Positions 1 to 57,500 of a stretch of DNA of 64,000 nt are shown here, one piece after another (position 1 is the stretch's first letter; the number at the start of each line of letters is the position of its first letter). Below the pieces are notes generated by a model. That model had not been told where the DNA came from. It made no database searches and saw only the letters and a list, made by a program, of their open reading frames with translations. The DNA comes from Sphaerodactylus townsendi. Taxonomy: Eukaryota. A program made the translations under genes and the position numbers. The DNA lies in the NCBI RefSeq assembly GCF_021028975.2, contig NC_059430.1, positions 120,962,001 through 121,026,000 on the forward strand, written 5' to 3'.

Positions 1-91
1 AGCTCACTTCAGAACGATGCTCTGAATGGTGTGAATTGCCTCTCGTGATGTGACCCCACCCTGATGAGGCTCTCTCATTTGCCCCTGACAG

Positions 92-227
92 ACAGCACAT
101 GGACGATGAAGACTACCTGGGCAGAACAGTTTGGTTGATTCCCATCACATTCCTAACCATTGGCTATGGGGATGTGGTGCCGGTAACAGTGTGCGGCAAG
201 ATGGTGTGTTTGTTTACTGGTGTTATG
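92..227 (+). CDS. KCNN4: KCNN4 pore exon (TIGYGD selectivity filter)
   Basis: ctgacag| acceptor; [45 protein letters not shown]; |gtaagt donor. Confidence 0.95.
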
Positions 228-3200
228 GTAAGTAACTATGGTAACTATGGCAAGTAACTAAAATCCAATAACAATATTAAACGGTGTAAATATTATAATA
301 CATTTAAAGGTTGCATTTTTAAAAATATTTAAAGGCTGTGTTTAGGCCAAAATGTAATAAAAGACAAATTTGCAAAACAATAACAACCACCCAACCCGTG
401 CAAAATGTACAAAAACAAATGTACACACATACAACCCCCCGCCCCACCCCGATACAGTGGAGGCATTGAGACACCAGCTGGGGAAATATAAAATGTGAGA
501 AGCTGTCAAATTCCAAATATGATCGCATGCCATTCTCAAATGTTGTCAGCTATTCAACAGTGCTCCATGCCAACCACCTGGCCGACAAACAGCAACTATT
601 ATAGTCAAACCAGGAATGCAAATATCCCAAACTGAAATAAAGTATATTTAAGGTATCTTGTAGCTATTCAACATCCGTGTTCATCTGGGAAATGAATCCA
701 TTTCATCTCTGAGGCATCCTCAGCTCAGCCTCTGTAGTCGGCGTCTGTAGTCTCTTTCCTCAACCGTTTCTTACCCTTATTCTTGCAGCTGTTATATTTC
801 ATTTTATTGTTGGATATTGATATTTTAAGAAACTTATTGGTGTTCACTGCCTTGAAAAGTGGAAGGGCGGGGTTAAAATGTCTTGAAAATAAAATAAACG
901 CCTGGAGGTTTGTCACAGACTGTTCGTCTCCAAGAAAAGGTTGGAAATAGCACTGGTGACTAAATACTGGATGTAGAAACATGTATTTATTTAGAAAATT
1001 TGGAAGCCACCTCTCCAGAATCTGGGCAAAGCAGCATACAAGTAAAATAGTAAAACTATACCGACACATCCATAAAAGCCAGGGCATAAAAGCAGCAGAA
1101 AACTATCGAAGCTGTTTGAACAGCTATTACGAAAACGTTCCTCAGTCCCAAAGCAGACCATCAAACAGGGAACAGTCCCAGAATGAGAGCTCTTCACAGT
1201 TTTACAGTATGCAAGAACATTGTATGGAGGATTGTCAAGCATGACTGTAGTTCAGAGTCACACAAAACCATACAATGAATCATTCATTGAAAATGCTGGG
1301 GGGAAGAATTAGGACTAATAAAAGGAAACACTTCTTCACGCAACATGTGGTTGGTGTTTGGAATATGCTGCCACAGGAGGTGGTGATGGCCACTCACCTG
1401 GATAGCTTTAAAAAGGGCTTGGACAGATTTATGGAGGAGAAGTCGATCTCTGGCTACCAATCTTGATCCTCCTTGATCTGAGATTGCAAATGCCTTAGCA
1501 GACCAGGTGCTCAGGAGCAGCAGCCGCAGAAGGCCATTGCTTTCACATCCTGCACGTGAGCTCCCAAAGGCAACTGGTGGGCCATGGCGAGTAGCAGAGT
1601 GTTGGACTAGATGGACTCTGGTCTGATCCAGCAGGCTAGTTTTTATGTTCTTATACAGAAATCCGTGGTAAATTAGAGTCAGGCCAGGTAACAAATACAT
1701 CTGAAATCTTCGAAGAGCGAACTCGAAGGCGGTCCATGGAGAGTCTGTCCTTGAACCCAGCTAGTAGACCTTTACCGGGAGCCCAAGTTATAAGTGAACC
1801 TGGGTTGTGTGTGGGTAAATCTGCCCTGTATCGAGGCACCTGCTTTTGGAGGTTAAACAAATATCTGGAGCTCCAGCTGTATACATCAGGTGTAGCTTAA
1901 CCTTGAGACATTGCATGCGTACTGCATTCCGCGTATCTTATGGTTTTATCTTGCCCTTCCTCTGTGGAGCTTTGGGGAACAATATGGGTCTCCTTTCTCT
2001 ACTGCTCACAACAATGGGACTGGCATCAGTGTACCCTGAGGTGGGGCAGCTGCCAGGGCTCCTGGCAGGGCCTACTGCTGTCACCCCCCCCCCCCAATTC
2101 ACTTGCTGGTGCTTCTCTGTGCTGTCAGCTACGCCTATGCCACTGGGAAAGTAGCTGCAGGCAGTGGTGGGCATAGGGAGGGGGAGAAAATGCAGACTGG
2201 CAAGGAAAGGACACATAGATGGAGGGCATTTGGAAGGAAGGCAGGTGTGGGGGCTTGGGGATGGGTAGAAGCGGAGGTCATAGAGCAGGGGTCTTCAAAC
2301 TATGGCCCTCCAGATGTTCATAGACTACAATTCCCATGAGCCCTACCACTTGGCCATACTGGCAGGGGCTGATGGGAATTGTAGTCCATGAACATCTGGA
2401 GGGCCATAGTTTGAAGACCCCTGTTGTAGAGAATTCTCTGCCCAGAGTTTCCTAAAAACTGGTACTGGCCCCGACAGCCCTGAACAATAGGTGAGAATGT
2501 GGAACAGGCCAAAGGGCCACCAGTGAGTTTCAAGGCAAAACAAGGATTCAAACCTGCATCTCCCAGATCCAACACTCTTGCCATTGCCCCCTAGCAGCTC
2601 TCTCCTTCGTCCCCTTTTGTCTCCTCACTCTGCCTTCTGCTTGGTTCACACAGGGGGTCGGCTGTACTGCCCTTCTGGTGGCCGTGGCTGCTGATAAGCT
2701 GGAGTTCAACCGGGCCGAGAAGCACGTCCACAACTTCATGATGGACATCCGGTGCAGCAAAGAGGTAACCGGACCGTTGGCCTTGACTGTCGCGGGGAGG
2801 AGGTTGGTCTGCATGCTGAAGGTCCCAACTTCAGTCTCCTTCATCTCCAGTAAAAGGGATTCCAGGCCACAAGATGTTAGGTCTTGGTCCTGTAGTCAAT
2901 AGGCACGAGGCTAGGTGGGAATGCCCTTTGTCTGCCCAAGATCCTGGGGCACTGCTGTCATTCAGAAAAGGCTATTCTGAGCTCGATGGGCCTCTGACCT
3001 CACTCAGTATAAGGTTGCTATGCTGACTTTCAGGTATCTCGCCCCCCGAAGAGATAGAAAAAGTGCAGAGAAGGGCAACGAGGATGATTGAGGGACTGGA
3101 GCACCTTCCTTATGAGGAGAGGCTGCAGCGTTTGGGACTCTTTAGTTTGGAGAGGAGGTGGCTGAGGGGGGATATGATTGAAGTCTATAAAATTAGGCAT

Positions 3201-6200
3201 GGGGTAGAAAATGTTGACAGAGAGAAATTTTTCTCTCTTTCTCACAATACTAGAACCAGGGGGCATTAATTGACAATGCTAGGGGGAAGAATTAGGACTA
3301 ATAAAAGGAAACACTTCTTCACGCAACGTGTGATTGGTGTTTGGAATATGCTGCCACAGGAGGTGGTGATGGCCACTAACCTGGATAGCTTTAAAAGGGG
3401 CTTGGATAGATTTATGGAGGAGAAGTCAATCTATGGTTCCCAATCTTGATCCTCCTTGATCTGAGATTGCAAATGCCTTAGCAGACCAGGTGCTCAGGAG
3501 CAGCAGCAACAGCAGAAGGCCATTGCTTTCACCTCCTGCACGTGAGCTCCCAAAGGCACCTGGTGGGCCACTGCGAGTAGCAGAGTGCTGGACTAGATGG
3601 ACTCTGGTCTGATCCAGCAGGCTAGTTCTTATGTTCTTAAGTCTCTCACTGGTTGCCAGGTTGGGCAACCCTAGAAAATGGATCCAACAGTGGCTACTGA
3701 CGCTGGTGACTAAAGGGAACTTCCATATACAGCGGCAGCAGACTTCTGAATCCCCAGCGCCAAGAGGCAACATCAGGGGAAGGCCTTGGCCTCTTATGCG
3801 CTGCTTGTTGGTCCTCCAGAATAACTGGTGGGCCGCTTTGTGAGACAGGATGCTGGACTAGATGGACCACTGGACTGCTCCAACAAAGGTCTTCTTTATG
3901 TTCTTAAATCTCAGCTGTGGAGATGAAAAAAAGAACCTCCACATTCAGGGGCAGTTAACCCCTGAATCCCAGTGCTAGGAGGCAACATCAAGAGAAGGCC
4001 TTGATTTTTATGCCCAGTTTGTTGGCCCTCCAGGACAATGGGTCGGCCACTGGGTGAGACAGGACCCTGGACTAGATGAGCCACTGATCTGATCCAGCTT
4101 GTGTTCTCTTCCAGATGAAATGTTCAGCTGCCAATGTGCTGCAGGAGGCTTGGTTGCTATACAAGCACACGAAGAGGAAGGATGGGCGAAGAGCGCGCCA
4201 ACACCATCGAAAACTGCTGTCGGCCATCTGCACGTAAGTGAGCCCTATGCACCCTGTGGCATACAGGGTGGATTCCAGAGTCCAGCTCCTTTTCCTGGGA
4301 GTGCCCGGTGGTTACAGCAAAAAAGGAAGGGCGATTTGTTAGCTGACTGGTTTGTTGGACCCCTGCAGTGTAGATAGGAGAGCTGGCACGGGGCACGTTT
4401 GTGGCCCAACTGTGCTAGTTAGCATAGCCCGGCCCAGAACTACTGAAAGACTTTAGAGATGGGATATACGGAGAGAGAAAAATGTCATCGATACGTCAAC
4501 TCCACTTCCTCTGAAAACCTGGAAGTGACATCACAGGCACTCTAGGATTTCACTGATCTCATATGCGGTTGGTGTGGTACCTGTAGGCAAGTCATCAATC
4601 CAGAGTCACTCCATCTTGATTTCAAGGACACAACCACATCTAGGAAAGCCTGGTTCTAGAGCAGGGGTCTGCAACCTGTGGCTCTCCAGATGTTCATGGA
4701 CTACAATTCCCATCAGTTCCTGCCCTGTGGCTCTCCATATGTTCATGGACTACAATTCCCATCAGCTGGCAGGGACTGATGGGAATTGTAGTCCTTGAAC
4801 ATCTGGAGAGCCACAGGTTGCAGACCCCTGTTCTAGAGTACCTTTGCCAGTAGTCGCACTAGACAAATTAAATGTTTTTGGTGTGTGTGTGGGGGGGTTC
4901 CTTTTCTAAGGAGACGACTGGAAGGATATTCATGCCAAGATTTTTGCGGATTCAACCAAAAGGTGGCCAAAGGGCAACTCCCCACCCCCCACCCCTCTTG
5001 GCAAAGCATGCTTATTGGCAAAAGGCAAATTTCAAAGCATGCAAGTGCTTTGCTAGCAAACAATACGACATGGAAATCATTTGAGAGTCATTAACCCAGG
5101 CAATGACCTTGGATATATGACCTTGGTACAAGGAAAGGTTTTGATACATAGGAAGGTTTGCTGAATTTTGTTTACGTATAGTGAGTGCCCTTCCCATACT
5201 GGTAGTTCCTAGGGTTTCCTGAGAAAGGTGCATGGGTCACGGCAGTATACAATTTAACTATTGTATTGTCGAAGGCTTTCACGGCCGGAATCACTTGGGT
5301 GCTGTGTGGTTTCCGGGCTGTATGGCCGTGTTCTAGCAGCATTCTCTCCTGACGTTTCGCCTGCATCTGTGGCTGGCATCTTCAGAGGATCCTCTTTAAA
5401 GGTAGAGGATCCTCTTTAAAGGTAAAGAGGATCCTCTTTAAAGGTAGAGAGAAGTGAAGAGGAGACTCTTTAAAGGTAGAGAGAAGTGAAGAATAAAATC
5501 CACCTCTTCTTGTTCTGGATTATGGATTGTATTATTTCATGCCGGCAGATAATATAAGGGCTCTCTAGGTTTGCCGGTCTCTAGGTGGGGCATGAAGAAC
5601 TTCTGGAATCACAACGAGACTTTTGGTCATTTGGCCATACAGCCCGGAAACCACACAGCACCCAAATGTAGCTATTAATTTGTACTGTTGTTGCATTTGG
5701 GAGGGAAGAAACACCTCGCAGCGCTAGATAGTCGGGGGTTCTAACTCTTACCTTCCTTTCAGGTTCCGGCAAGTTCGGGTGAAACACCGGGGGATTCGTG
5801 ATCAAGTGAATGCAATGGTGGATGTTTCGAAGGTGAGTCAGTCTACTGTGCCTAGCAGGTGGAGGGTTCACAAAGAATCCGGGAGGGGGGATGTCAGCAG
5901 TGGCATAGTGGTGAAGAGCAGGTGTACTCTAATCTGGAGGAATCCGGTTCGATTCCCTGCTCTGCTGCCTGAGCTGTGGAGGCTTATCTGGGGAATTCAG
6001 ATTATCCTCTGCACTCCAACACACACCAGCTGGGTGACCTTGGGCTAGTCACAGTTCTTCTGAGCTCTCAGCCCCACCTATTTCACAAGGTACTTGTTGG
6101 GAATGGTGGGGAAGGGAAGGAGTCTGCAAACCACTTTGAGACTATTTAAAGGTAGAGAGAAGTGAAGAATAGAAGCCACCTCTTCTTGTTCTGGATTATG

Positions 6201-7578
6201 GATTGTATTATTTCATGCCGGCAGATAATATAAGGGCTCTCTAGGTTTGCCGGTCTCTTGGTGGGGCACGAAGAACTTCTGGAATCACAACGAGACTTTT
6301 GGTCATATGAGTTGCAAGAGACTCCCATGGCTGCCTCACCAGAAACTAAATCTGGGGTATTTCCCCTTTGGGAGACCCTTCTGTAGAATGTGTCATTCCA
6401 CTTCACTCTTTGGACCCACAAGAATCCCCTCTGCTCCACCGTTCTCTCATCCCTCAAGTTGGGCACCTTCTATGCAGGGATCTATCCCCCCAATTTGGAC
6501 ACCAGTCCCCTGCAAGTAAAAGGGAAACACCCTAACAATGTTATGCCCAACCTGCGTGCAAGTTACCTGCCTCCTGTTTTGTCCCCTTTCACTCCATACG
6601 CAGCTCATTTTTCAAGGGCAAAGCTCTGAAGTGGCTGCAGTCTGTCTGTCCCTTTGGTTGCTTCACCTGTGTCCACCTTGGGGGGGTGGAGCTAAGTTTT
6701 GCGGAAGAAGCAGCAGAGCTAAATTCCGTATCTCCCTTTTTTATCCTACTGCTCCCAAACTTCCATTTTTCCATTCCGCAAGGAGCCAACAGTGGATGGC
6801 TGTGTGGTGTGGAAGTTCAAATGCGGAATGCTCGGACCTTCCACCAAACTATAGTTCCCCAACTGCTTGGGCAGGATCGGAGATACGTATGCTCAAGGAG
6901 TTGGGAAATTATAGTTAGCTGAAAGGGCTGAGCGTTCTCCTTTTAAGTATCCAGGCAGCACATATTGGAAACGTGGCTAAGCCCCAAGTACTTCCTCACA
7001 CCTCTCTCGAGCAGGAGCAGCAGTGGTGTAGTGATTAAGGGCAGGTGTACTCTAATCTGGAGGAATCCGGTTCGATTCCCCGCTCTTCCGCTTGAGCTGT
7101 GGAGGCTTATCTGGGGAATTCAGATTAGCCTGTGCACTCCTACACACCTTGGGCTAGTCACAGTTCTTCTGAGCTCTCTCAGCCCCACCTACCTCACAGG
7201 GTGTTTGTTGTGAGGGGGGGAAGGGCAAGGAATTTGGAAGCCCCTTTGAGTCCTACAGGAGAGAAAGGAGGGATATAAATCCAACTCTTCTTCTTCGAGA
7301 GCTAGTGGCCAGCTTTGGCTACACTATGGGCTCCCTCCAGCCCTTTCTCATCTTTGGGGCAACAGAGAGACCAGACCTGGTGTTAATTGGCCAATTGTCA
7401 CCTTCCCTGACAGATGCAAATGATCATGTATGACCTCAGCTCCAGCCTTAGCAACTCTCACCGGGAGCTGGAGAAGCGGATCGAGGCCTTGGACAGCAAA
7501 CTGGATGAGACCATGAAGCTGCTCTCAGCCCTTGTGGAGTCCAAGCAGCAGCAGCAGCAGCAGCAGGAGGCCCCGTGA
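92..7578 (+). CDS. KCNN4: KCa3.1/SK4 intermediate-conductance Ca2+-activated K+ channel, 3' part (5 coding exons; 5' exons lie outside the window)
   Basis: GT-AG exons 92-227, 2654-2764, 4115-4233, 5763-5832 and 7414-7578 splice in frame. They give the pore ([17 protein letters not shown]), S6 ([11 protein letters not shown]), the CaM-binding domain ([11 protein letters not shown]...AANVLQEAW...FRQVRVKHR) and the C-terminal coiled coil. Synteny with SMG9 supports the call. Confidence 0.96.
1282..1652 (+). mobile_element. CR1 LINE 3' fragment
   Basis: RT C-terminus ([21 protein letters not shown]...[10 protein letters not shown]) plus 3'UTR ending ttatgttctta; near-identical copies elsewhere in the window. 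Confidence 0.85.
2654..2764 (+). CDS. KCNN4: KCNN4 S6 / start of CaM-binding domain exon
   Basis: [37 protein letters not shown]; 111 nt, AG/GT flanked. Confidence 0.95.
3031..3638 (+). mobile_element. CR1 LINE 3' fragment
   Basis: [42 protein letters not shown], plus the same 3'UTR. Confidence 0.9.
4115..4233 (+). CDS. KCNN4: KCNN4 CaM-binding domain exon
   Basis: [39 protein letters not shown]; ccag| acceptor and |gtaagt donor. Confidence 0.95.
4662..4830. mobile_element. Palindromic hAT (Charlie-like) MITE
   Basis: TIRs cagggg...cccctg; perfect 8-bp TSD ttctagag. Related copies at 2287-2423, 18329-18467, 20910-21011, 39305-39428, 47015-47160, 47988-48121 and 57772-57919; partial copies at 10469, 13924, 17171, 32774 and 42638. 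Confidence 0.88.
5262..5663. mobile_element. Penelope-like terminal-repeat fragment (inverted halves)
   Basis: gaaggctttcacggccgg...gacgtttcgcctgcatctgtggctggcatcttcagagg; related copies at ~11250-11450, 24515-24640, 31830-32090 and 55917-56070. Confidence 0.7.
5348..5388 (-). ncRNA. Minimal type I hammerhead ribozyme motif within the Penelope relic
   Basis: Minus strand reads CCU-CUGAAGA-U-GCC(agccacagaugca)GGC-GAAAC-GUC-AGG: both catalytic-core boxes, stem I, stem II and a GUC cleavage triplet. Confidence 0.6.
5763..5832 (+). CDS. KCNN4: KCNN4 exon containing the His358 equivalent
   Basis: [23 protein letters not shown]; 70 nt; ttcag| acceptor and |gtgagt donor. Confidence 0.95.
7013..7295 (+). 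mobile_element. tRNA-derived squamate SINE (representative copy)
   Basis: A/B-box-like head (agtggtgtagtg...ggttcgattccc) and (CTT)n tail. Other copies at ~5896-6145, 7747-8046, 9135-9415(-), 10656-10940, 17486-17786(-), 19370-19663, 27253-27550, 39574-39860, 54628-54942 and 60138-60350(-). Confidence 0.85.
7414..7578 (+). CDS. KCNN4: KCNN4 terminal coding exon (coiled coil, Q7, stop)
   Basis: [54 protein letters not shown]; a possible 3'UTR donor follows 7604. Confidence 0.93.
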   Translation: MQMIMYDLSSSLSNSHRELEKRIEALDSKLDETMKLLSALVESKQQQQQQQEAP

Positions 7579-9060: not shown

Positions 9061-12000
9061 TATTCACTTTTCTCCCCTATGGAAGCCCCAAAGCAACACA
9101 CCACAACCCCCCCTTCTGTTCTCTTGGCCGGGTTAAGAAGAAGAGTTTGGATTTATATCCCCTTTCTCTCCTGCGAAGCTCAAAGGGGCTTACAATCTCT
9201 TGCCTTCCCCTCACAACAAACACCATGAGGTGGGTGGAGACCTGAGAGGCGAGAAGCTGTGACTGGCCCAAAAGGTCACCCAGCTGGGCGTGTGTGGGAG
9301 TGCACAGGCTAATCCTGAATCCCCAAGCCTCCACAGCTCAGGCGGCAGAGCTGGGAATCAAACCCGGTTCCTCCAGATTAGATACACGAGCTCTTAACCT
9401 CCCATGCCACTGCTGTTCCGCCACTGTTAAGCTGAGAGGACTCAGCAAATTCCCCAGCAAGGTTTTTGGCAAAATGAGAACTTGAACCCATCTCCCAGGA
9501 TCCCAGTGTGACATTTTACCCACTCTGCCCCACTGGCTGCACTAAGTGAAAAGGCGAAGAACCCAGTGGAAAGTAGAAAGGGTACGCCCACTTCTCAAAG
9601 ATAAATGTCATGGTATCCAGTGTTTTAAGATCTCCGCATTGTCCCATTCCATCAGACCACACTCCGCCCAAAATGATTCCTTGCTGTGGCCAGGACAGTC
9701 TTGCTAACAGCTAAGAAAACATTATTTTGTACTGAGGGGAGCCAGGATTTTTGTGGCCAATTGCGGTTTCGCCGACTAATCGTTTATGGCACTTAGCAGC
9801 AAACAACAAACTTATAAGCAACACATTTCAATAACAAAGGCAAGGCCAAAACAGAGGTTGTTTGGGGCCCAAGCGTAATGATTTCTCCTGTCGATTTTAC
9901 AATGGCAATTTGTTCCAACGGCGCTTCCCGGTTTGGAGAGTATGGGAGCGAAAAGCAGGTTGCAGATTGTCTAAGCGACCCCCTTGGTTGCTGGTTCTGG
10001 AATCATCTTTGTGTTTGTTGGATTGAGTTGTGGGATATGTGTTACATTCTGCTGGGTTCGTTTCAGAGTCCCAAGAGAAATGTCAGATGTTGTGACTTCT
10101 CCGGATTGCAAGCCTTCTCCTCTTTTGTGAAAGCTACTCTTCTTGTGTGTTCCCCCCCCGGCCCGAGAGGGGTCATGACTCAGTTGCACAGCGCCTGCTT
10201 GACATACCGAAGGTCTCAAGTTCGAACCCTGGCATCTCCACTTAAAGGGATCAAGTAGCTGCCAGTCTGAGTATTGACCACGATGGACCAAAGGTCTGAC
10301 TCAGCTTCCCATGTGACCTCTACTGTATTGTGTGCCATGGCCTGGAAGGGAACCAATAAGTTTGGCTTAGCTGACATGGCCTGTTCCTTTATTCCCAGGT
10401 GCCTCTCAGTCTTCTGCACGGAGGCCAGAAGTATACTTTTGACACCCACCCTGCCTGCTCATGCTAGTCCATGGGTCGGCAACCTGTGGCTCTCCAGATG
10501 TTCATGGACTATAATGCCCATCAGCCCCTGCAGACCCCTAGCCTCTCACAACATTCTCACTGGTGCCAGCTTTTCTTGCAGTAGGGCACAGATTCTCAAA
10601 TCTAGCCAGATTGCGCCAGTACAAACTGCTACTGCTAAGAGCAGCGACTACTAGAACAGCAATTAGTAGCGGCTGGAAACAAGTGCACTCCTGATCTCTG
10701 GAGGAACCGGGTTTGATTCCCAGCTCTGCTGCTTGAGTTGTGAAGAATTCAGATTAGCCTATGCACTCCCACACACGCCAGATGGGTGACCTTGGGCTAG
10801 TCACAGCTTCTTGGAGCTCTCTCAGCCCCACCCAGCTCACAGGGTGTTTGTTGTGAGGGGGGAAGGGTAAGGAGATTGTAAGCCCCTTTGAGTCTCCTAT
10901 AGGAGAGAAAGGGGGGATATAAATCCAAACTCTTCTTCTTCAACTATGGTTTGCATTGCACTTTTGTGTCTTGGGTTCCTTCTTTACTGCCTGGCTAGGA
11001 TGTAAGGGTCAGGGTTATTCATTCCCACTTGTATCTGACACAAGGAGCTTTGACTCTTAAAGGTCTATACTCTAAAAACCCTGTCAGACTCTAAGGTGCT
11101 ACTGCTCTCGAATCATCTACCGCTGCCCAAATCTTCTACTGCAGACCAAAAGTAACACCATCTGAAATGCTCCAAACCCTGAGTAGATGCAGTAAAGTGT
11201 GAGCAGGAGTTTTCATTTCCTATGAATTTTTTTAAAATAGTTCATCACCTTGGGGTGTTGTGTGGCTTCCGGGCTGTATGGCTCTGTTGTAGTAGCATTT
11301 TTTCCCCGACGTTTCGCCTGCATCTGTGGCTGGCATCTTCAGAGGATCCTCGGAAGCCACACAGATGAAGGCGAAATGTCAGAAAATGCTACTAGAACCT
11401 GCGCCCATATACAACCGACCTAACACTAGTGTCTGGCCGTGAAAGTCTTCATTGAGTTCCTCATCACCTTGATTGAAAGTTGCTCAAACCAGCAGGGAAA
11501 ATAAATGGGGTTTTTTGGAGGGGGGGGCAGAGAATAGCCAAGAAAGCTGCCCCTTAGGTGAAGAGCAGCTATTTTTAGCACGAGTGTGACTTCTGCCTTC
11601 TTCTCCTTTCCAGCTATCAACCGAGATAATTTTTGATCTCAGGAGTTTGGACCATCCGCCCAGCAAGGAAGCTTCAGGCCAAAAGACTTTTTATGATGGA
11701 CTTTGTGGTAGAGTGGAGGGTAGGAAAATGAATGGACTCTACTCCCACCTTGTGGCAGAGGTGAATCACTACAGGTTTTTCCAAAAATTTTTTTTAAAAA
11801 AACAAGCTTCTTTAACATACTGCAAATAGATTGAAAAGGACGGCAAAAGCAGCGCTTGGGACTTTTGACTCTGTGTTGAAAGCTTCAGAATGCACGTCCA
11901 GAGATCGACGGCATCTTGCAAGAAGCATTCTGGATGCAGACCAGAAGATGGAACGTTCACTTTGCCCCACACTTTGGGAGGGTTTCAGTTTTAAATTATG

Positions 12001-45234: not shown

Positions 45235-46469
45235 TCAAACCTCAGACTCTAAGGCTTTGATGAGAACACGCTGAGCGTCTTCAGCTACTTCGTTGAGGGA
45301 ACTCCACAGCATGTAGTAGGTAGTGCCAAAGGAGATCCCCCCAGCAGCCAGGGAACCAAATATGGGCACTGTGCTGGCAAAATACTCTACCACCATCAAC
45401 GCTCCACCACCAGCCTTGGTAAGCATCTTCACCACTACATCCTTGGAGATCTCTTTGTACTTGAGGGACTTTCGATAACCGCAGATCTCTTCCACAGAGT
45501 TTACTTACCTTCTCGTAACTTGTCCAAGGACTCATCGTCCAGGCCAAAGTTCCTGCGGTACTCTGAGAGGGACTTGACTAGGATGGTCACATCGCAGGCT
45601 ACGGAGAGACCGGGGATGGGCACGGCCGCCACACCGCATGAGACAGTGGCCAGCTTCCAGATCTGTTTCTGCAAGGCCTGTTTCTTTTTGCGCAAGATTT
45701 CTAGGGAGATGTTGGGCAGGGCTAGGAGGAAGGCGTGTCTCTTGTGGCCTGGAAGCTCTCGCTCTAAAGTCTCCTCCAGCAGCATAAAGTCATACTTGCT
45801 CAACTCCCAGCTGGAAAGGAGAAAGATGCGGGGAGAGACCACATTTTCAGCCTCTAAGCACTCTTGGCAATTCTGGCGGATTAGCTGAAGGATGCTCCCC
45901 TCATCATAGGTGTGCGGTCGACGCTTTCTGGCGGCCTCCAAGTCCAAGTCTACTTTGGAACGTACAAAATAGAAACGTTTGCCCTGCTTCTGGATCTCTT
46001 GGGCCAAGCGAGCATGGTTGGATCTGAAGCGCTCTGAGGCGAGAAGGATAAAGAAGTCGTAGCAGGAGAAGTCCACCTGTTTCAGGTACTTGTCGGACTG
46101 AAAGTTGGGCGTACCGATTCCCGGCAGGTCCCAAACCATCACGTTGGGGTGCTTGGGGTGTGGATACGGCGTGGGCTTTAATGTTGTCTCCACCACTCCA
46201 GTGGGGGCAGCTCCATGATCTTCGTCCCCTAGGCCCCGGATAGCGTTGACAAAAGAGGACTTGCCGGAGCCAGACTCTCCTGTTACTGCGATATTCAGGT
46301 GAGCGTTCTCCAAGGTCTGTAAGTTTTCCATAATCTTGGACGCAGCGTCCGCCATTCTTCCTTCTTCGAGAGCATCTTTAATCTGTTCAATGTCTTCTTC
46401 AGTAATGATGTCATATTCATCTAGGAATTGAGCCTCGTTGGGCGAAGCCATTGGGGGCTGGTCCACCAT
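45235..46469 (-). CDS. IRGC: Immunity-related GTPase, IRGC-like (interferon-inducible GTPase 5 family, GKS type), with a frameshift at ~45470-45520
   Basis: G1 GESGSGKS, G3 WDLPG, G4 RSKVD; YPHPKHPNV, LPNISLEIL, FGLDDESL. The second ORF (45235-45495) supplies IPIFGSLAAGGISFGTTY-type sequence and NEVAEDAQRVLIKALE, as in IRGC. Acceptor ctcaag| at 46485. Tail-to-tail with SMG9, as in mammals. Confidence 0.88.
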
Positions 46470-47014
46470 AAAATCAAGTCGAGGCTTGAGAGGAAAAGGG
46501 AGAGAGAACACAACCCATACCATTAAACATTTTAAAGAAACCAACCTTCTTTCCCCAATTTGGGAACCCTTGCCTGTTTCTTACCACTATACTCCGCAAA
46601 GTCTGAAGCTTTCCTCGGGTCTAAGAAACCGTCTTCTTCTGCAGGAATAAGCAACCTTTTATAATTCTAGAGATGAACTATATCAACATTCAAATAAACA
46701 AAACATCAGTATATGAAACTGTAAATATCACCTAGTGTTACTCATAGTTGATACGTGGATCCATATAGTTTCCGCAGCTTAAATGCTGGTTACGTACGAT
46801 TCCTTTATTAGGAACACATGAAGTTTGAGATCTCACAATAAGAAATAAATATACAGAGGTCTCACAAGAAGTAAAAATATTGAGAGCAGTAACTCTGTGC
46901 AATTGGCTTAGTGCAGTGGCATAAAGGTAAGCACGACTCATAACTGGATTGCTGGCAATTGTTCACCTCTATCAGTTTCCCTTTCTGTAAAATACCTCTA
47001 AGGAGGCCTTAAGC

Positions 47015-47160: not shown

Positions 47161-49649
47161 CCTTAAGCCAAAGAAAGAATCACTTAAATTGGAGGATTTC
47201 AAACCTTGCTGAGAAGAGCAGTAGATTACAGACTATTGTGTTTTACGTCCCTGGGTTGAGGCTGTATGGAGGACAGGAACAGGGTGCACAAAACGACAAG
47301 GAATCTTTTTCATTTGAGCCAGTGTGGTTGGAGTGGTTGTCAGACGAAATTCTGGAAGGCCCAAGTTTACATCCCCACTCGCCATTAAATGTACAGGCCA
47401 ATCTTGTGCCAGCCACTCTCTCTGAGCATAATGTACCTCACAGAGTTGTTGTGAGGGTAAAATAGAAGATGGGAGAACGACGAACACTGCCTTGAGAGGC
47501 CTGAAGAAAGAACATGATAAAAAAATGTCCTAAATAAATTCTGTGTTGGGTATAAAACCATGTTTCCTCAAACAAGGTCTCTGCTAGAACCACATACCAA
47601 GGATGAATGGGTCAGATACAACCTGGCAAGGAAGCCATGGAAAAGAGTGGGGTATCGTTTCCAGAGGGCTTGGGAACTTTGGAAAGGTATAAGAGCTGTT
47701 TGGGAGATGAAACCAACGCAGATACATACAATCCTGTCAGCTTTAGGTGATTATTTATTTATCCCCTCCTTCATTCAAAGAGCTCAAGGGGATGCACTTG
47801 GTCCCCCTTAATTAATCCTTACAACAATCCCGCGAAGTAGATTTAGGTCTGAAAACATATGACTGATCCCACGTCTTGCCGAGCAAGAATTTGAACCCAA
47901 GTTTATCCAACACTCTTGCTTCTACTCCACACTGGCTCACATTGTTATTGGTTGGAGGATCCAAATCCTCATTTTAAACCCCTAGGCTAGAAGTGGCCAA
48001 CCTATGGTGATCCAGATGTTCATGAACTACAATTCCCATCAGCCCCGTCAGCATGGCCGGCAGGGGCTGATGGTAACTGTAGTCCATGAACATCTGGATC
48101 ACCATAGGTTGGCCACCCCTGCTCTAGGCCATGCTGAATGAAAGCCCATCCTTCAGCCACCCTAGTTACGGGGAAAACTAATCTGAATTAAGCAACTACG
48201 GACTCCCAAAAAGAATGGGGTGTTATTCAACCACGTCATTCTATTTTCTTAAATACCATCCCCAAGGAGCACAGACCCCACATTTGTCTGTACATTCAAG
48301 GGGGTGCAGCGTGTTAACAACCAACAACCCCTGTCATTTGTCTGGGGTGTTCAACCGCCCAGGGGGAAGCAAAGAAAAGAAGTTATCATCCGAACAATGA
48401 ACCTTGGTTAAGGATGGTGAATAGGTGAAAATTCATAATTCCCCCAGGGACATATAGGAATGCACCCTACACTGCTCTATTGCCGTTGTAACCATTGCAG
48501 CAACAGCCTCTACAACTCGAAGAAAAAAAAACTCCTGTTTCTTTTCTTCTTATATACATATATCCCAAGGACACAATCCCATTTGTCTCCTGCGGACCCA
48601 CACCCCAAACACCCACAGCAGTTCACACAACCAAGCCTCCCATTACGGCATCCCCTCTGGGCCTTTTCTTGCCCCCTTCCTCTCCCAACACATGACCCAT
48701 TTCAACTGCACTCTCTTCCATATTTCATCCCTTTGTGCTATTTACTGGCTCATCTTGCGTCCTACTGCCTTATCCTTTATACTACCCACCCACCCCACCT
48801 GCAGTGCCTGTAGCAGGGCCATAACCTTTAAAGTGGCCAAGGGCTGGAAATTCAGAGCACAATCTCTCTCTCTTTTTTTTTAATCCGTTCCAATTCTGAC
48901 CTATCGCAATAGGAAGTAAGTCAGACCCCCCCCCTTTTAAAATCGGTTCCAATTCTGACCTAGTGCAACCGGAAATAAAAGGAAATATTGCTAAACTGTC
49001 CGACAAGGGGGTGTCTGTGTGCGGCCATTTTTATAACACTGCAAATTATTTATTTATTTATTTATTAAACTTTTATACCGCCCCATCCTCTAGGGGCTCT
49101 GGGCGGTGTCCTCTCTTATGTCCTCTCTTCCTTTAACGTTCCAAAAAAGTCATTATGGCTGATTCTGTATGGGCCAAAAACAGCGGTGTGAAAACAGTAT
49201 AAACCCTTTTACACCATTTTAAACCCTTTTGCGCCATTTTCACACCGTTTTCACACTGCTGGCCCATGCGGAATCAGCCTGAGATTTTGGTAACCAGCAC
49301 CCTGATTTAAATTGCTTCATTGGCTGATTCACTGGTTCAAAGGGGAAGGAATAAACTTTTTCGTAAAAAGGGGAGGGAGGGAAGGGTGCAGTGCTCTAAT
49401 TGAGGAGGTGAGAAGCTGCATTTGGCTGGGATTCTCCTTGGGACAGAAGTCTGAAAGGGCCAGGCTTTGCATGTGGTCGCTGCAAAATCACGGGGTGGGG
49501 TGGGGTGTGGGGATCTTCATTCATGCCCATTGCAAGTGGGATCCATCCCAGGGGTTACAGCAGGACTTCCAGCACCCACAGTAGCAATTCTCCATTCCTC
49601 CCGCCCTCAAAAACAGATGCACCAGCCATAGCCACGAAACTTAGGGCGA

Positions 49650-50650
49650 GTCACACAAACTGTAAAGCAATAACATCCAGCAGGAGGTGAAAACGAAACT
49701 CCACGGATCTCAGCGGAGGTTCAAGAGCCACCAAGCCGACAAACACACACACACACACACGCCCCCCGCTACGTCCTGCTAAACGTGTCTTCCAACCGGT
49801 AGCCCACGACAGTCCCGAGCAGACCCCCTCGGACGACCCACCGCCACTCCGGGGAACCTCTGCTCCCCAAAGCGCAATTTGGGGGATTTTTTTCTTCGGC
49901 CCGGCGGCTTTATTTTTTTTGCAATGCCGCCCGGTGTTCCAAAGCCCCTGATTTCTTGCAAACTGTTTGCAAACCACACACACATTGCAAGCCGAGCACT
50001 TGACCCACCAGAAGCGACTCCAGCGAAGGACCGGCGAGGCTTTGCCGGAGTTTCTCGAGGGTGTTTGAAGTTGCTACGGAGGAAGCGCAGCCGGTGCAAA
50101 AAAAGTCCGCTTCCTGCCGCCGCGGAAACCACACTCTTTCTGCCCGGGGTGGCGCGTGTGTATGGGCGGGCACGCGTTGGCGGCTCCACGCTGCCCCCTG
50201 CTGGAAGGCACGCGTGCAAAGCCAGATGGACCCATGCCGTGTGGGAAAAACCCGTTTCATTCATTTTTTGTCAGGCGGGAGATTGCACTGGAAATGGGCG
50301 CGGGAGCAAGGACGTTCAAAGCAATTGGAAAGTCCCGGGAAGTCCACTGCAGAAAAAAGTAAATAAAAGCTCTGCTGCGGGCGTACACTAAGTCACGTGG
50401 TTTGCAACTTGTCAGAAAGTGAAAGTGAATTTTTGTGCGTGTGATTTCCCGTGCAATGAGAGGAGATGGCCGAAAGAGCGGCACCGATTCTGTGAGTACC
50501 AAACGCGATAGGGAGAAATATTTGGGTTTGGGATTTTTCACGTGGGATTTTAAACATGCTATCATGATGGGAATTATCAGCCTTCCGCCGCCTGACCCAT
50601 CGCGGCCCCCAAAGCTGTTTGCAGCATCCGGGGAAAGGTTATACCTGCCC
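49650..50650. promoter_or_regulatory. CpG island with ISRE/IRF and NF-kB motifs; putative bidirectional promoter
   Basis: GAAAACGAAACT at 49689-49700 (ISRE); GGAAAGTCCC at 50327-50336 (reverse complement of the canonical kB site GGGACTTTCC), followed by GGGAAGTCC; E-box GTCACGTG at ~50392; GAAAGTGAAAGT at 50415-50426 (IRF-E). Confidence 0.7.
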
Positions 50651-51981
50651 TAACAGCTGTTGTCACTTGGAAAGGGGACCTTGCGCTGGGAATCTGGAGA
50701 GCGTGTAACCTCAGCTTGTGGGTTCTGTGGGGCAGTACTTGGAAGGAGTTGCAAAGAACCAAATTTAAACAAAACAGTTTACTTCTCTTTACAAATAACA
50801 TTAAACATCAACATTTAACATTTACAATTCAAGGTCCTGTTCAGGTTGCATTTCAAGTCCTTCTAGTTACAGTCTACTGATACTGCCAAGTCCAATTCTT
50901 CTTTGCAAGTGGGTTGGCTCCTGAAGACTCCAAGGGCTTGATGAACAGGATGCAACATGATGAAGGTTTCCAGGAGAACTCTCACCCATTACAACCACAA
51001 AAAGAAACCCTGAAACAATAAACTCCAACATTTTCAACATAGCAAAAACAAACAACTACCTTCCCAGTAGTTCCCAATAATATTGCAGTTTACCTTAACA
51101 AGGTGTTAAGGGCTTATAGAAATCAAGGTCCGAGTCTGGTAGCCTTGTCTTCTCCAAAGAGCTCTGCAGCCTTTCTGCTGCTCTGAGTCTCCACCCCCTT
51201 ACTGGTTCAACCCATTCTGGGCATGGGGGTTACAAGCGCATCCTTCTTCCCAGCGCAGGATCGCTCAGGACAGGTGCAGAAATTCTGCCCGGTTCATTCA
51301 AATTGGGCATGTCCATGCAGTGCTTCCGGCAGCTTTTCAGTGAATTGGGCTGATTTCCCTTGAATGAATATGTCATTCGTATTTAATTTTTGAAAAGTTT
51401 ATTTCACTGCACATAGAAACCCTGGGGCTAGCTAGCTGATCTCTCTTGGAGAAGCGGGCCACTTTGAAAAGTGGACTCTAGCATTTTATCCCGTTTAAGT
51501 CCCTCCCCTCTCCAAACCCCTCCCTCCTCAGGCTCCACCCCCAAATTTCCAGGTATTTTCTAAGATGGAGCTTGCAACCATATCTGCATCTGGAATGATC
51601 TGTGATCCTTTCTGCTGTCCTAGTAGGTGGGTGGTGTCTGTGAACAGGTGCAGTATACAGAATCCATCCATTTAGCACAGGGTTTTCTCCTCTTTCTGGC
51701 AAACGCTTTCCAGGGTACCAGAAGAGAAAGGGATTTTCTGAGGCCTGCTAGTCCAAGCGGAAGGGGATAGAAACAGTTTCTGAACACAGTCTGGGAAGGT
51801 AATGCTGGGATAGCTGCAGGTTAGGTAACAAGGCAAAACTAAGAGAGCAGCTCCATGAAGCCTTGAACACTTGAGGCTGATTTATACTGAACCACACCAT
51901 TAATCCATCAAGGTCAGTTTTGTCCACTCTGACTGACAGCGGCTATCTGGGGCCTCAGATAAAGGTATTTTGCATCCCCAT

Positions 51982-52046
51982 CATTCATTCATTCATTCAT
52001 TCATTCATTCATTCATTCATTCATTCATTCATTCATTCATTCATTC
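51982..52046 (+). repeat. (CATT)n microsatellite
   Basis: About 16 tandem CATT units. Confidence 0.95.
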
Positions 52047-53670
52047 TACCTCTCACCTCCCCAAAGGGCTCATCTGACCCTTTTATCTGGACATAGTGGG
52101 GATTAGGGCTGGGCATTTGAGTGAAGCCAAATGGGAAAAAGCCATGAAAAATACCATTCCGGTTTTTCTACGTTTGTTTCAGCTCATCTGAAGAAACAAC
52201 AACCTCATCAGGCTATTCAGAAAAAGCCGCATAGCCCAAGCCGAAAAATGCCAAATACTGTTTCGGCTTCCAGCAGCAGAACAGCCAACAGAGCTGCAAA
52301 TAGCTCTCCATCCCCTTCCCCCTTTATCTTTGAAGTCAGAGCCAGTGACCAAATCCCTGAAAAGAGCTCTCCCAGAAGAAAATTTTTCAGGTTGATTTTA
52401 ACAACCTGAATTTTTTTGAAAAAATCCAAAAAAAATCAACATGGGGATTCAGCTTTGTTTTTGCTTTGGTTTTGGCCTTTTCAGAAAGTGCTGGGTCTTT
52501 TAAAGCCATACCTGAAAAAATTGCGCGCACACCTAGCGAGGATTGAATCTGGGATCTTCCAGCTTGCAAAACAGGTGCTTTATCATTGAGTCACTTATTT
52601 ATTTTACGGTCATCGACCGATAGCTATATACAAAGTTCAGCTAATAATTCCATCAAATAATAGATCCAAAACAAGATTTGAAAACATCAAATATATAACA
52701 CATGGTACAAAAACTGTCTAAAACATTGGTTTATTTTTCTTGACAGGAGATAGAGAGGCACAGCAGATTGAAACAGGAAGGTAAAAACAAGAAAAATAAA
52801 CCAATACAGCCTGAAAAACAGATAAAATGCTTGGAGCCCGGTACAAGCACTGCACTCCCTGATAGGCAGGAACAATACTGGGGATCTAAGATGGAGTCCA
52901 ACCATTCCACAGGAAGTGACATCGTTTAGTCCTGCCTCCCTGAGTATAGGTTGGAAATCACCCATCCAAGATGCCCTCATCGCCCCCCAGGAGAAGGCCC
53001 CTTCAGGGTAAGTACCAATGGTCCGTTCTTGAGAGAGGGAGCAATAAGCCAGGAAATGTTGTCAGATGTTGTTGATGCTCAATATCTTGTATTCTCTGTT
53101 TAACCATAGATTTTGGCTGAACAGTATGCTGGGCCAGAATAATTGAGTCAAACTTTTTCGGCTTCCAGCAGAGAACAACCAGCAGAGCTGCAAATAGCTT
53201 TCCATCCCCATCCCCCTCCATCTTTATGGTGGTGTGTTGGGTGTGTGACATGATTTGGCAAACAACAGGCAAGAAAGAAAGGGCCTTATTCTCCAATCAT
53301 TTAGTTCCTACGGTTGAACCATTTACAGTTGCAAGCTAGAGAAAAGGAAATAGAAGATTATTAACTTTGAACGTTCCCTAGTACAAGAGTGTATGGTTAT
53401 TGTCACTTTGAAAATATAAGAAGTGGAAGCAGACTGTAACTTAAAAACAAAACAAAGTATGGAATATTGTCTTTGGACTATTGGCTACCAGTACGTTTTA
53501 TGGTTCCACCTGTCTCTATCAGTTCCCTCTCAGCACTTGGGAGAGCCCCCGCAATGGGGCTGGAACTCAGTACCAGCGAGTACCACCACAGAAAAAGCCC
53601 TATTGGCTGCCAAAACTGATGTTGTCAAATTTCCTTCCTTTCTTCCCTCTCTCCCTCCCTCTTTAGGAAT

Positions 53671-54575
53671 ATGGCTGACATCTTCAGAAATGGCCTTCAG
53701 TGGGCCCTTGGTACATTCCTGCGATCCTTTATAGCCCAGGTCAAGAGAGTCCTGATATTTTCAACTGTGGTGATTGTGGGTGCTGTTCTCTTGTCTTCTA
53801 CTTGGCTTGCTGTCCAAAAGGTGGATTATTCTCTGTCAAGCACTGAGCGTGAGGTCGCTGTGACCAACAAGCATAAGTGGACCCCACACAGTGTCGTCAA
53901 AATCCTAAGGGACTTGCTGCACTATGTTGCTGTCCTGTTGTCTTCCTATGAACCCCTGACCCTTGGGAACCTCTTGAGGCACCGCGACCGCCTGAGCGGG
54001 GTGAACTATCTGCTCCAGGCTTGTTTCAACGAAGCCATTGATGGCTTTTGCCGGGAGCCTTTCTCAGTGCAAGAGAATTCCAGAATGGTCATCCACTGCG
54101 ACGGACAAACCGTACAGTTCTTCTCCGGCAACGGCGACTCGCGAAGATTTCGGTGTACATCTTGCACAACGCCATCCAATTCGACGTCCAGGAACGGACG
54201 GCTGAAATGTACCTTGCTAGGCTGTCTATTCGCCAGGAGCCGTTGAGCATTCGTGATCTCCTGCGGGTGAAGAGCAACTTACAGTCCTGGGGTGTGCTTT
54301 CGGAAGGGCTGCGGAGCTGCCTGGAGTTTGCCGTGCAGAAATATGCCGAGGAGCCTTTGTGTGTCCAAAACAACGCGGACATGGCTATAGACTGTGACGG
54401 CCAAGTGCTGAAATTCGCTTCCGGGCGTCAGAACAATCACATCAATATCTATGACGTGCGAGATGGCACCATTCATTACCACATCAGGCTCTCTGGTTTC
54501 TGGGCCAGTATTGTGGGGTTCTTCAGGGGGAGCCCAGACCACACACGGGGGAAAAAGTTGTTGCAGTTAGAGTGA
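53671..54575 (+). CDS. Uncharacterised ~300-aa protein with an N-terminal TM helix and two ~90-aa tandem repeats; one frameshift near 54140
   Basis: Polypyrimidine acceptor ctccctctttag| 4 nt before the ATG. ORFs 53671-54246 and 54048-54575 join at ~54140. The repeats share EP..VQ.N..M.I.CDGQ...F.SG...I..Y. AATAAA at 55173. Confidence 0.75.
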
Positions 54576-57500
54576 ATTAACTGTTCACTCTTGTGTCACT
54601 TGAAACATGGATATATGGTAGCAGTGGAGCAGCAGTGGCGTAGGAGGTTAAGAGCTCGTGTATCTAATCTGGAGGAACCGGGTTTGATTCCCAGCTCTTG
54701 CCGCCCTGAAGGGTTAATGAAGGAAAAACTTATCTGGGGAATTCAGATTAGCCTGTGCACTCCACCACACATGCCAACTGGGTGACCTTGGGCTGAGTCA
54801 CAGCTTCTCCAGAGCTCTCTCAGTCCCACCTACTTCACAGGGTGTTTGTTGTGAGGGGGGAAGGGCAAGGAGATTGTAAGCCCCTTTGAGTCTCCTGCAG
54901 GAGAGAAAGGGGGGATATAAATCCAAACTCTTCTTCTTCTTCTACTGTTCTTCCCGGCTGATGCCACATGGGGAGGGTGATGTCACAGTTGAATCTTCCA
55001 TTTTAAAAAAGTCCTAAATCTTCTTGTTCGTGGGAAAATTCCCCTCAGACTGCATGCGGCTATCAGTGTTATTTTTGAATGCTTTTCCATTTGGGGGAAA
55101 AAGTCAAATCTTCTTGCTTGTGGAAAAAATAGTACGTCAAAGCAAAGACTAGACTTTTAACTAATAACACTGAATAAAAACATTTAACAAAACATTTTGC
55201 CTAGCTTTCCATAGGAAAGGAGGCATTTTGAGATTGGTTTGTTTGTTTAAATGGGGCATTAAACTTATCATCGCCCACCTGTCGTTTGAAGCGGATAACC
55301 CAGAAAGGACTGAACCTGTTTTTGCATGATTGAACAGATGGTAAAAGCATCCTTGGGAAATTTATTCAGGTGGCACCTTGCTATGGCTTAACTTAAGTGG
55401 TTTATTACAGGGCAGATGAAAATAAATGTTTTTTTTAAATCAGATTTTTTTACAAAATTAAATCAGATGTTTAAAATTTAAATTGGATTAAAAAAATACA
55501 AGGCCTTTTGAGAAAAAAAATCTAGATTAAGTAATTTTCTATTTAATGTCCAGGGAAGATGTTGGCCGAGAAAGTGTATATATTCCCTTTAAGAATCCTT
55601 ACCTTAGAGATCATTTATCATGTATATTGGGTCTTTTATGAGGCAACCATTTGGTCTTGCTAGGTTGTTTACAGCGCTGGCCCTCATTAAAATTGTAAAC
55701 CGTGTTTGTGTTTAGTTTCAGTAGTGTTATTCTTTAATTAACAGAATTGGCTTTTACAAGGCCAGATTCTAAACCAGACAGATAGGTCTTAATTGCCATG
55801 AATGCACAGGTGGGAGTCATCTCCCTCATTTCTATTCGAGACCTAATTGGTTGATTATTGATCAAATGATCTACATGAGCCAATTCTATAAGACCCCTGA
55901 AACTATTCTAAAGACGTATTGTCGAAGGCTTTCACGGCCGGAATCACTTGGGTGCTGTGTGGTTTCCGGGCTGTATGGCTAGGTGTTACCTAGCAACATT
56001 CTCTGGCCTGACGTTTAAGCCTGCATCTGTATTTTAGCATCTTCAGAGGATCCTCTGAAGATGCCAGTCTGGTCAGCAGCCTCAGGAGAAAAGAATACTA
56101 AGCTGAACGCATACAACTCAGAAGCTCCGGCCAACTGCCTAAAATATTCTAAAGACATTCATTCATTCTACAGAGATTCATTCATGAGGATTCTCCCGAT
56201 AAAGGCTGAATAGCTTTGTATTGTATTGCTTTTTTACTTAGACTGTGGGGCTACGAGAAGAGGCTGATTTTTTTCCTTTTTTCCTTTCCTTTTTTAATAA
56301 AATTTTTAAAACTCAGCTGTTTGAGAGTATTTGGATAAAGAACCCTGGTTTTGGTACATTACTGGAAAGTCACCCAGCTTAGGGTAACCTTTTTTCACAA
56401 ATGTACATCATAGTCCAAAGGTTATTCACCATGAAATAAAGATTAATGTTGGATTATGTAGCATGTAACTGTATATTCATGCTATGTTTAAATTTTTTGG
56501 TGAATGAATTCCATTAATCCATTCACATTGTCATGCTCTTCCATAGATTTCTATAAGATTATTTTGAGCAGTTTTTCCATCTGGGAGATATTATCACACA
56601 TGCTGGGTTTTGTAGTTCTCAAAACTGTGAATTTGTGTCTGCAGAGATAATGTGCCTCTTCACAGGAAAAAATGTTATAAAATAAGCATACAGAGTTGCG
56701 AGAAAGACCTTAATCCAGTGGTGGGATTCAGCTGGTTCGCACCACTTTGGCAGAACCGGTTGTTAAAATGGTGCTTGTAAACAACCAGTTGTTAAATTAA
56801 CTGAATCCCGCCATCGGAACCGGTTGTTAAATTATTTTAATCCCACTATTGTCTTAATCCCATTGTTCCTTTGAAAATCTATGTACACAGAATCAACCCC
56901 TTTCCCCTTAAGTGCTAAGTTTCACAAAGTGCAGTGAATAGAAGATTGTTTAGCATGGAATAGGTCTGCGTAAATGTCTAAGTGGGAGGAGGGTGGGACA
57001 GACAGTAAAAATGAAAGTGAAACTTTTTAGCAGAATATTCCACAAGACTTAGGATCTTTGTGTGTATAGCTTGAGGTTAATTGTATTATTCTCTCCCTGG
57101 AGGAGAAAATCGATAGTGGCAGCAGGCCATAAAAGAGGCCAAATTTAGGAATATTTTAATGAAGTTCCTCAGCAGTGGTGTATTTGCCTTGGGACAGGGG
57201 TACCCTCTGTCCCTGGGTGCCAAATCAGCCCCCGCCCCCACAATGAGATCAGGGAAGGCCCGGCAAGGCAGTAGGAATTCCTGCTGCCTTGTAGATCCTA
57301 ACTGGCACTCTCGGCCCCACGCATGTCGTCATTGACATGGGCAGGACCAAGGAAGCCAGAGGACACCCCCCCCCAGTCTCACCCCCTCCCCAGCTGCCGG
57401 CTTCCCCCCAACCCCGGCAGTCCTCTGGAGAGGACAGAAGCAACTGGAAGGCTCCGTGCTGGGGTCTTTGCTTTTATAAGCTCAGGGGTGTGCACATCTG

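Follow-up and report, generated by a model that had tools for sequence, protein, structure and literature searches.

Locus organization and gene model

In the genome assembly of the gecko Sphaerodactylus townsendi (GCF_021028975.2, contig NC_059430.1), we analyzed a stretch of 64,000 nucleotides (positions 120,962,001 to 121,026,000 of the forward strand), hereafter the window, in whose coordinates all positions are given. Two plus strand open reading frames (ORFs) in this window, 53671-54246 (191 aa) and 54048-54575 (175 aa), overlap, with frames offset by 2. In the first ORF, an N-terminal helix is followed by a hydrophobic segment of 22 residues, a linker and the larger part of a first repeat; the second one encodes the end of this repeat, the whole of a second repeat and a short tail. 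A first-pass annotation, made from the letters alone, had read the two ORFs as a single gene joined at about 54140, and alignment with the DNA of orthologues places the break there. Here we describe this gene, the divergently transcribed immunity-related GTPase (IRG) gene next to it and the protein family that shares its repeat domain.

The gene structure was derived from contigs of four public runs aligned to positions 49600-55500; the results for runs X1, X2 and X4 are given here. The contigs of X1 and X2 are DNA-like, that is, they read through the intron with few differences from the window per 1.6 kb; run X4 has no intron coverage. In record 18 of the X4 contigs (1,199 nt), letters 1-210 correspond to 50282-50491 and letters 211-1168 to 53667-54626, and the skipped interval begins with GTGAGT at 50492 and, at its other end, has a long polypyrimidine tract before the AG at 53665-53666. 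Because this contig skips a GT..AG interval, it is a spliced mRNA, and the locus is a genuine two-exon protein-coding gene on the plus strand, with exon 1 at 50282-50491 and exon 2 from 53667 to at least 54626. The intron (50492-53666) contains a high-copy repeat at ~50585-51570. Exon 1 comprises the 5' untranslated region with an upstream ORF (uORF), kappaB, E-box and interferon regulatory factor element (IRF-E) motifs, and an ATG at 50466, in good context, that is followed by 8 codons and 2 nt; the coding part of exon 2 occupies 53667-54575, with the stop codon TGA at 54573-54575. The uORF has 22 codons (50294-50362, plus strand, MGAGARTFKAIGKSREVHCRKK and a stop) and overlaps the kappaB site.

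Across the exon junction, the sequence reads MAERAAPILN and then MADIFRNG. Given that the junction peptide MAERAAPILN-MADIF agrees with the N-termini of the orthologues from Tiliqua (MAERAALRLNMTDLL), Eublepharis (MAARAGLNLNMSEL) and Hemicordylus (MAERALLNLNPAGLL), that the Hemicordylus protein lacks an internal methionine at the place of 53671, and that a homologous mini-exon followed by GTGAG is present in Paroedura and Gekko kuhli, the most likely start of the coding sequence is 50466 and not 53671, as originally annotated, which gives a protein of ~312 aa. The gene model is thus corrected by the addition of an upstream coding exon.

The deposited models of Zootoca and Rhineura start at an internal methionine and probably miss a small first exon, coding or non-coding. 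The Gekko kuhli model (GCA_051903775.1, labelled UNVERIFIED_CONTAM) has its first exon at 10001-10033 (MFAVPEHSLGR), and the mini-exon of this species (6309-6339; MAGRAGFIL followed by GTGAG) lies 3.7 kb further upstream, adjoining IRF-E and kappaB motifs; this model is probably wrong at its 5' end.

A duplicated alpha/beta domain

The product of the gene consists of a short N-terminal helix, a hydrophobic anchor, a ~40-residue linker and two tandem alpha/beta domains of ~98 residues each, slightly longer than the ~90 aa of the first-pass annotation by both hidden Markov model (HMM) and AlphaFold2. Repeat 1 (53944-54236), which was delineated by the HMM, AlphaFold2 and internal BLASTP, is split by the frame break; repeat 2 (54237-54530), delineated by the HMM and AlphaFold2, is intact. 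The two copies are 39% identical over 72 aa (BLASTP, E 2e-14) and both display the signature EP..VQ.NA...(V/I).C.G....F.SG.G...I.VY, whereas their DNA is barely alignable, with a single 61-nt stretch at 69% (E 0.014). This combination, which had been noted in the first-pass annotation, implies that the duplication is old and has been maintained at the protein level. The domain HMM matches ORF2 with E 1.3e-44 and ORF1 with E 6.9e-25; the single-repeat HMM has 99 positions.

AlphaFold2 models and profiles were made from intact orthologues, and the two halves of the window protein were searched separately. In the model of the Zootoca orthologue, a long N-terminal helix (residues 2-54, low confidence) and a disordered linker are followed by a confident globular part. 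The model of the partial Anolis protein, which is naturally anchor-less, has a mean predicted local distance difference test (pLDDT) score of 88.2, a predicted template modelling score (pTM) of 0.74 and a core at ~96 (35-sequence alignment). In each repeat, a short strand (EPL) is predicted to lead into two helices and a short helix, which are followed by a sheet of four antiparallel strands and by a closing helix, so that the models favor the earlier proposal of a duplicated helix-plus-beta domain on a membrane, here behind a hydrophobic anchor. The C-terminal tail (54531-54572), with its conserved K.LQLE end, adds one more edge strand to repeat 2 in the Anolis model (residues 238-243).

Other readings of the protein termini have to be revised. 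The C-terminal GFWASIVGFFRG, called amphipathic in the first-pass annotation, forms the helix that closes repeat 2 and is no separate membrane element; in the model, GFWASIVGFF is the fourth helix of this repeat and TAEMYLARLS is its counterpart in repeat 1. Neither terminus is amphipathic beyond chance: the hydrophobic moment observed at the C-terminus is reached by 41% of shuffles, and at the N-terminus, which had also been called amphipathic, the best moment is 0.46, a value reached by 31% of shuffles.

The inability to assign the protein to any family was borne out in all libraries searched. Neither half matched Pfam at E<=1, a sequence profile search of PDB gave no match, and Foldseek returned no PDB match at E<=1e-3 for either the full-length or the anchor-less models. 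A further PDB-directed fold search and a BFVD structure search gave no match, and the ESM Atlas yielded TM-scores of at most 0.33 by shape and no usable match by features. REDD1/DDIT4 (PDB 3LQ9) was listed among the closest known systems. The protein has no catalytic-looking signature.

There is a resemblance to a single blade of the WD40 repeat (PF00400). The strands of each repeat, above all those of repeat 2 (DG..L.FASG...N.INVYD..DG.IHY), follow the WD40 pattern DG..laSGs.D.tI.vWD...G and form a four-stranded antiparallel meander. We rejected membership in this family: profile matches at E 1e-4 to 1e-7, confined to positions ~246-288 of the two-repeat profile, fell to E 10-6000 or vanished with the single-domain HMM. 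There was no WD40 match in Pfam at E<=1 and no WD40 structure in the fold searches. Unlike in WD40 proteins, each sheet has two helices before it and one after it, typical members have just two units, and the model is not a closed propeller. The resemblance appears to be that of a local motif.

The sequence is known only from automatic "uncharacterized" predictions, for which we found no domain entry, structure or paper; the literature search for six LOC identifiers of orthologues likewise gave no paper. If the models are correct, the domain, with no described relative in sequence or structure, is a confident new fold candidate for structural biology.

Orthologues, paralogues and selection

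A word-based search identified intact orthologues of 300-317 aa in Zootoca, Rhineura, Elgaria, Gekko kuhli, Tiliqua, Eublepharis, Lerista, Hemicordylus and Paroedura; a partial Anolis protein, three unnamed transcript-derived proteins and a protein of the tortoise Gopherus (46% identity) were matched as well. All these records are labelled "uncharacterized" or "hypothetical". The window protein is closest to those of geckos (69-75% to Eublepharis and Gekko). LOC118086966 (Zootoca vivipara), LOC133370825 (Rhineura), LOC134408152 (Elgaria), LOC129343098 (Eublepharis), LOC143837022 (Paroedura) and LOC115643925 (Gopherus) represent the same gene, with 55-75% amino acid identity to the window in both halves, the same anchor and two repeats, the K.LQLE end and, among the squamates, the same IRG neighbor in head-to-head orientation. 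They are automatic predictions without name, domain or publication, and differ from the window copy in that only the latter carries the 2-base frame break.

The ratio of nonsynonymous to synonymous substitution rates (dN/dS) across reptile orthologues, a comparison that the first-pass annotation had proposed, is 0.22-0.46 in pairwise estimates (window vs Gekko 0.29; window vs other geckos 0.29-0.31), and the gene is under moderate purifying selection. With intact orthologues and a spliced transcript at hand, and with no match to a characterized family or a transposable element protein, none of the findings that would have overturned the initial reading was made.

To delimit the family, a profile of 14 orthologues was scored against 1.84 billion representative proteins, which yielded 66 clusters at E<=1e-3, of which 50 reached E<=1e-10. 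We looked up 30 clusters; those with a named source come from turtles, crocodilians and squamates, except for one from an eel (Conger) and one from a hemichordate (Ptychodera). The suggestion that the gene is absent from mammals agrees with this distribution but is not proven by it. At full library size, the HMM matches the Ptychodera protein, with several repeats, at E 1.5e-12 and the Conger protein at 1.2e-5, and profile-profile comparison gives probabilities of 89% and 66%, respectively; a word-based search started from the hemichordate relative matched only itself. Since both HMM and profile-profile comparison connect eel and hemichordate proteins to the family, the domain is older than reptiles, patchily distributed elsewhere and strongly expanded in non-avian reptiles.

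Repeat number varies widely by HMM: most squamate and alligator paralogues have 2-4 copies, and 20 copies are found in a Chrysemys picta protein (1,934 aa), 13 in one from Pelodiscus (1,281 aa) and 10 in one from Platysternon (934 aa). In these three turtle proteins, the copies are arranged head-to-tail and there is no anchor. The database name of the Platysternon protein, "molybdenum cofactor biosynthesis protein MoeA", is apparently an error. In turtles and alligator, genes of the family form tandem clusters.

A 470-aa Pelodiscus sinensis protein has a weak Pfam match to PP1_inhibitor (CPI-17) at residues 310-374 (31.3 bits against a cutoff of 22.4). This match lies inside the family domain, with no single stretch passing, and is probably spurious.

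A promoter probably shared with an IRG GTPase

The ORF 45504-46544 on the minus strand encodes an IIGP-family GTPase (Pfam E 7e-107). The main coding exon of this IRG gene extends over 45238-46553 (tblastn in two frames), and its 5' exon, followed by a GT donor, lies at 50009-50118 on the same strand (record 17 of the X4 contigs). From its putative position beside SMG9, this GTPase may be IRGC. The IRG gene and the gene described here start at most ~163 bp apart and diverge; the core of the putative bidirectional promoter, at 50119-50281 between the IRG first exon and exon 1, lies in a CpG island (GC 0.57-0.63, CpG observed/expected 0.93-0.98; 0.63 and 0.93 in the core itself; 0.38 for the whole window). 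A head-to-head pair with an IIGP gene is also found in Zootoca, in Rhineura and in Paroedura, where the annotated ends are 197 bp apart; in Gekko kuhli, an IIGP gene on the minus strand precedes the annotated start by ~9.7 kb. Judging from these genomes, the arrangement spans geckos and non-gecko squamates.

Paroedura, Gekko, Rhineura and Zootoca all retain a conserved block that corresponds to 50175-50225. Just 3' of the transcript start lie a kappaB site (GGAAAGTCCC, 50327-50336), an E-box (TCACGTGG, 50393-50400) and a tandem IRF-E (GAAAGTGAAAGTGAA, 50415-50429). The IRF-E and the E-box are conserved in Paroedura and Gekko, the E-box being the best-conserved promoter motif among geckos, and Gekko has a kappaB site at the corresponding place; in Zootoca and Rhineura, the promoter block is recognizable beside kappaB-like motifs and motifs like the interferon-stimulated response element (ISRE). 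An ISRE/IRF-E element is thus present at the promoter (window-wide, the core motif occurs 7 times vs 2.0 expected), and no gamma-activated sequence (GAS) element was found there. The description of the gene as interferon-stimulated comes from such promoter motif matches only and is used here as a prediction; a literature search for squamate interferon-stimulated genes returned nothing of relevance. With an IRF element and a kappaB site in a promoter that both genes would use, we consider co-induction of the protein with the GTPase most likely.

Membrane anchor and topology

The hydrophobic segment (VLIFSTVVIVGAVLLSSTWLAV, VLIF...WLAV, 53749-53814 on the plus strand) is 22 residues long and part of the long helix in the AlphaFold2 model, and its Kyte-Doolittle mean of 2.15, with hydrophobicity kept in all full-length orthologues, supports the transmembrane segment proposed in the first-pass annotation. 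It is located ~30-55 residues from the start of the protein and has a basic N-flank and an acidic C-flank in the window protein (+3/0) and the 11 full-length orthologues examined; among 12 orthologues, net charge is +1 to +3 in the N-flank and 0 to -2 in the C-flank. The positive-inside rule, applied to these charges, predicts that the N-terminus is in the cytosol and that the domain faces the lumen or the cell exterior.

The paralogues point the other way. The N-termini MGACIPK, MGGCASK and MGNCWCSC (P0026, P0052 and P0055) lead straight into the domain, and such MGxC starts are typical of N-myristoylation combined with palmitoylation, so that these proteins may be acylated. Many paralogues have neither an anchor nor a signal, and some open directly with a hydrophobic stretch, after which basic residues follow. 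MGxC and anchor-less paralogues imply a cytosolic domain, in conflict with the flank charges. N-glycosylation sequons are essentially lacking in the orthologue clade; two conserved N-x-T sequons are present in a paralogue clade in which an N-terminal region of 70-100 residues comes before the anchor, but they overlap residues conserved anyway. P0052 is a 136-aa single-domain protein that is present on six transcript-like contigs (including Logan SRR22107229).

Proposed function

We propose that the gene is transcribed from the CpG-island bidirectional promoter that it would have in common with the IRG GTPase, that the IRF and NF-kappaB responsiveness predicted from the promoter motifs would lead to co-induction of the two genes, and that the protein could serve cell-autonomous innate immunity at a cellular membrane, as a binding or scaffold module with no enzymatic activity. 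Tetherin/BST2, viperin and the membrane-bound IRGM proteins are interferon-induced, membrane-anchored effectors or regulators. By analogy with these, a small protein placed at the membrane by an N-terminal helix or anchor, with IRF/NF-kappaB-type motifs, a coupling to an IRG GTPase that is genomic and presumably also regulatory, rapid evolution and expansion in particular lineages, might have a comparable role, although it has no sequence or fold similarity to any of them. The variation in repeat number, the tandem clusters, the variable anchors and dN/dS of ~0.3 in the family fit a family engaged in an arms race.

Several observations weigh against this proposal. As described above, the topology hints from flank charges and from paralogue N-termini disagree with each other. 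The IRF-E and kappaB motifs are inside the 5' exon of the gene described here, 200-300 bp upstream of the IRG start, and may serve mainly the IRG. There is no IRG gene within 10 kb of the orthologue in the Gopherus tortoise. Furthermore, interferon does not induce mammalian IRGC1, a testis-enriched protein on which the sperm fibrous sheath and sperm motility depend (PMC9232189).

Taken as a whole, that is, including the two-exon gene model, an assembly artefact at the frame break and the immune role at a membrane, this explanation is the best one we can offer, and we hold it tentatively, at slightly less than an even chance. A direct physical link between the protein and the IRG is considerably less probable.

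The same gene might instead have a non-immune role: co-expressed with an IRGC-type GTPase in male germ cells, the protein would function in sperm or another reproductive structure, and its rapid evolution and varying repeat number would reflect reproductive and not immune conflict. The properties of mammalian IRGC1 fit such a role, as does the conservation of the E-box TCACGTGG among gecko promoters, and dN/dS of ~0.3 with family expansion would suit reproductive proteins equally well. However, the shared promoter region contains a tandem IRF-E and a canonical kappaB site that are conserved across gecko genera, whereas mammalian IRGC promoters lack ISRE and GAS elements, according to literature quoted in PMC9232189. 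We regard the reproductive role as the main rival, although unlikely.

A more far-reaching version of the immune proposal would treat the ~98-residue unit as an undescribed domain of deuterostome age, lost or unrecognizable in birds and mammals, that radiated in non-avian reptiles into proteins with 2-20 repeats and with transmembrane, acylated or soluble forms. The squamate founder would then be an IRF/NF-kappaB-driven membrane partner of the IRG GTPase and a missing component of cell-autonomous IRG immunity, one that studies of mammals would not have brought to light. This is a speculative scenario, and its being right in full is rather improbable.

IRG biology is known almost entirely from mice. 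If the immune proposal holds, squamates, and reptiles more widely, carry a membrane-associated family built from an undescribed domain, the founding member of which has been tied to an IRG GTPase by a common promoter for roughly the whole of squamate history; a co-regulated partner gene would then provide a handle on how IRG systems work, or worked, outside mammals.

Frame break and the possibility of gene decay

An uninterrupted reading frame is not present in the assembly. Alignment with the DNA of Gekko, Paroedura, Zootoca, Rhineura and Gopherus shows the window to be two bases longer at 54139-54150, inside GGCGACT(C)GCGA(A)GATT. These five orthologues encode G-D-C-E/Q-I at this point, with the protein reading SG.GDCEISVY, and the window reads ...FFSGNGD upstream of the break and ...ISVYILH downstream of it. 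The contigs that cover the exon have 1,646 letters for 1,648 of the window in X1, 1,639 for 1,641 in X2 and 958 for 960 in X4, with 2 gaps each, and this 2-letter shortfall is exactly what brings both ORFs into one frame. The gaps in all three contigs probably lie at the break and would give an intact frame there. At window position 54116, 25 nt upstream of the break, X1, X2 and X4 have G where the assembly has A, another site at which the assembled sequence departs from the population.

A similar disturbance affects the adjacent IRG gene, in which the frame changes at ~45500-45530 relative to Zootoca, Paroedura and Rhineura through indels of -2 and +1 within ~20 nt, with an in-frame TAA; this could be another assembly error or a real lesion. 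The altered stretch GAAG|GTAAGT resembles a splice donor. In view of the two extra bases, the three contigs that are each 2 letters shorter, and the adjacent IRG indels, the break in the gene described here is very probably an assembly error or a private allele and not gene loss.

The alternative is that the two extra bases are real and that the gene, perhaps together with the linked IRG, is a recently inactivated pseudogene in a decaying locus. Frame breaks in both genes, with a stop codon in the IRG, would be expected in this case, and it would make sense for two linked genes under common regulation to be lost together. Nevertheless, the contigs that are shorter by the 2 letters needed for frame restoration come from three other samples of the same organism, the transcript is present and spliced, neither half contains further stops, and dN/dS against other geckos is not above that of intact orthologue pairs. 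Moreover, both breaks consist of 1-2-nt indels clustered within 6-20 nt, which is typical of consensus errors. Recent inactivation is accordingly quite improbable, and frame breaks in this assembly should not be taken as pseudogenes without read support.

That the ORFs are a transposon- or virus-derived remnant or chance ORFs, as the location of nearly the whole coding sequence on one exon and the adjoining repeat, similar to a short interspersed nuclear element (SINE), at the 3' end might hint, is hardly conceivable given the orthologues at the same syntenic position in four squamate genomes, purifying selection, the spliced mRNA, the single copy in the window, the lack of a reverse transcriptase, integrase or transposase domain in family members and the lack of a match in BFVD.

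Repetitive sequences around the gene

Rfam has no match in the window, and ARAGORN detected no tRNA in the 3' SINE-like repeat. Very high-copy repeats are located at 54525-55115 and 50585-51570, with summed contig depth of up to 10^7 across all four runs. The SINE-like one at 54525-55115 begins ~25 nt past the stop codon, and all transcript and DNA contigs end there, at ~54626-54645.
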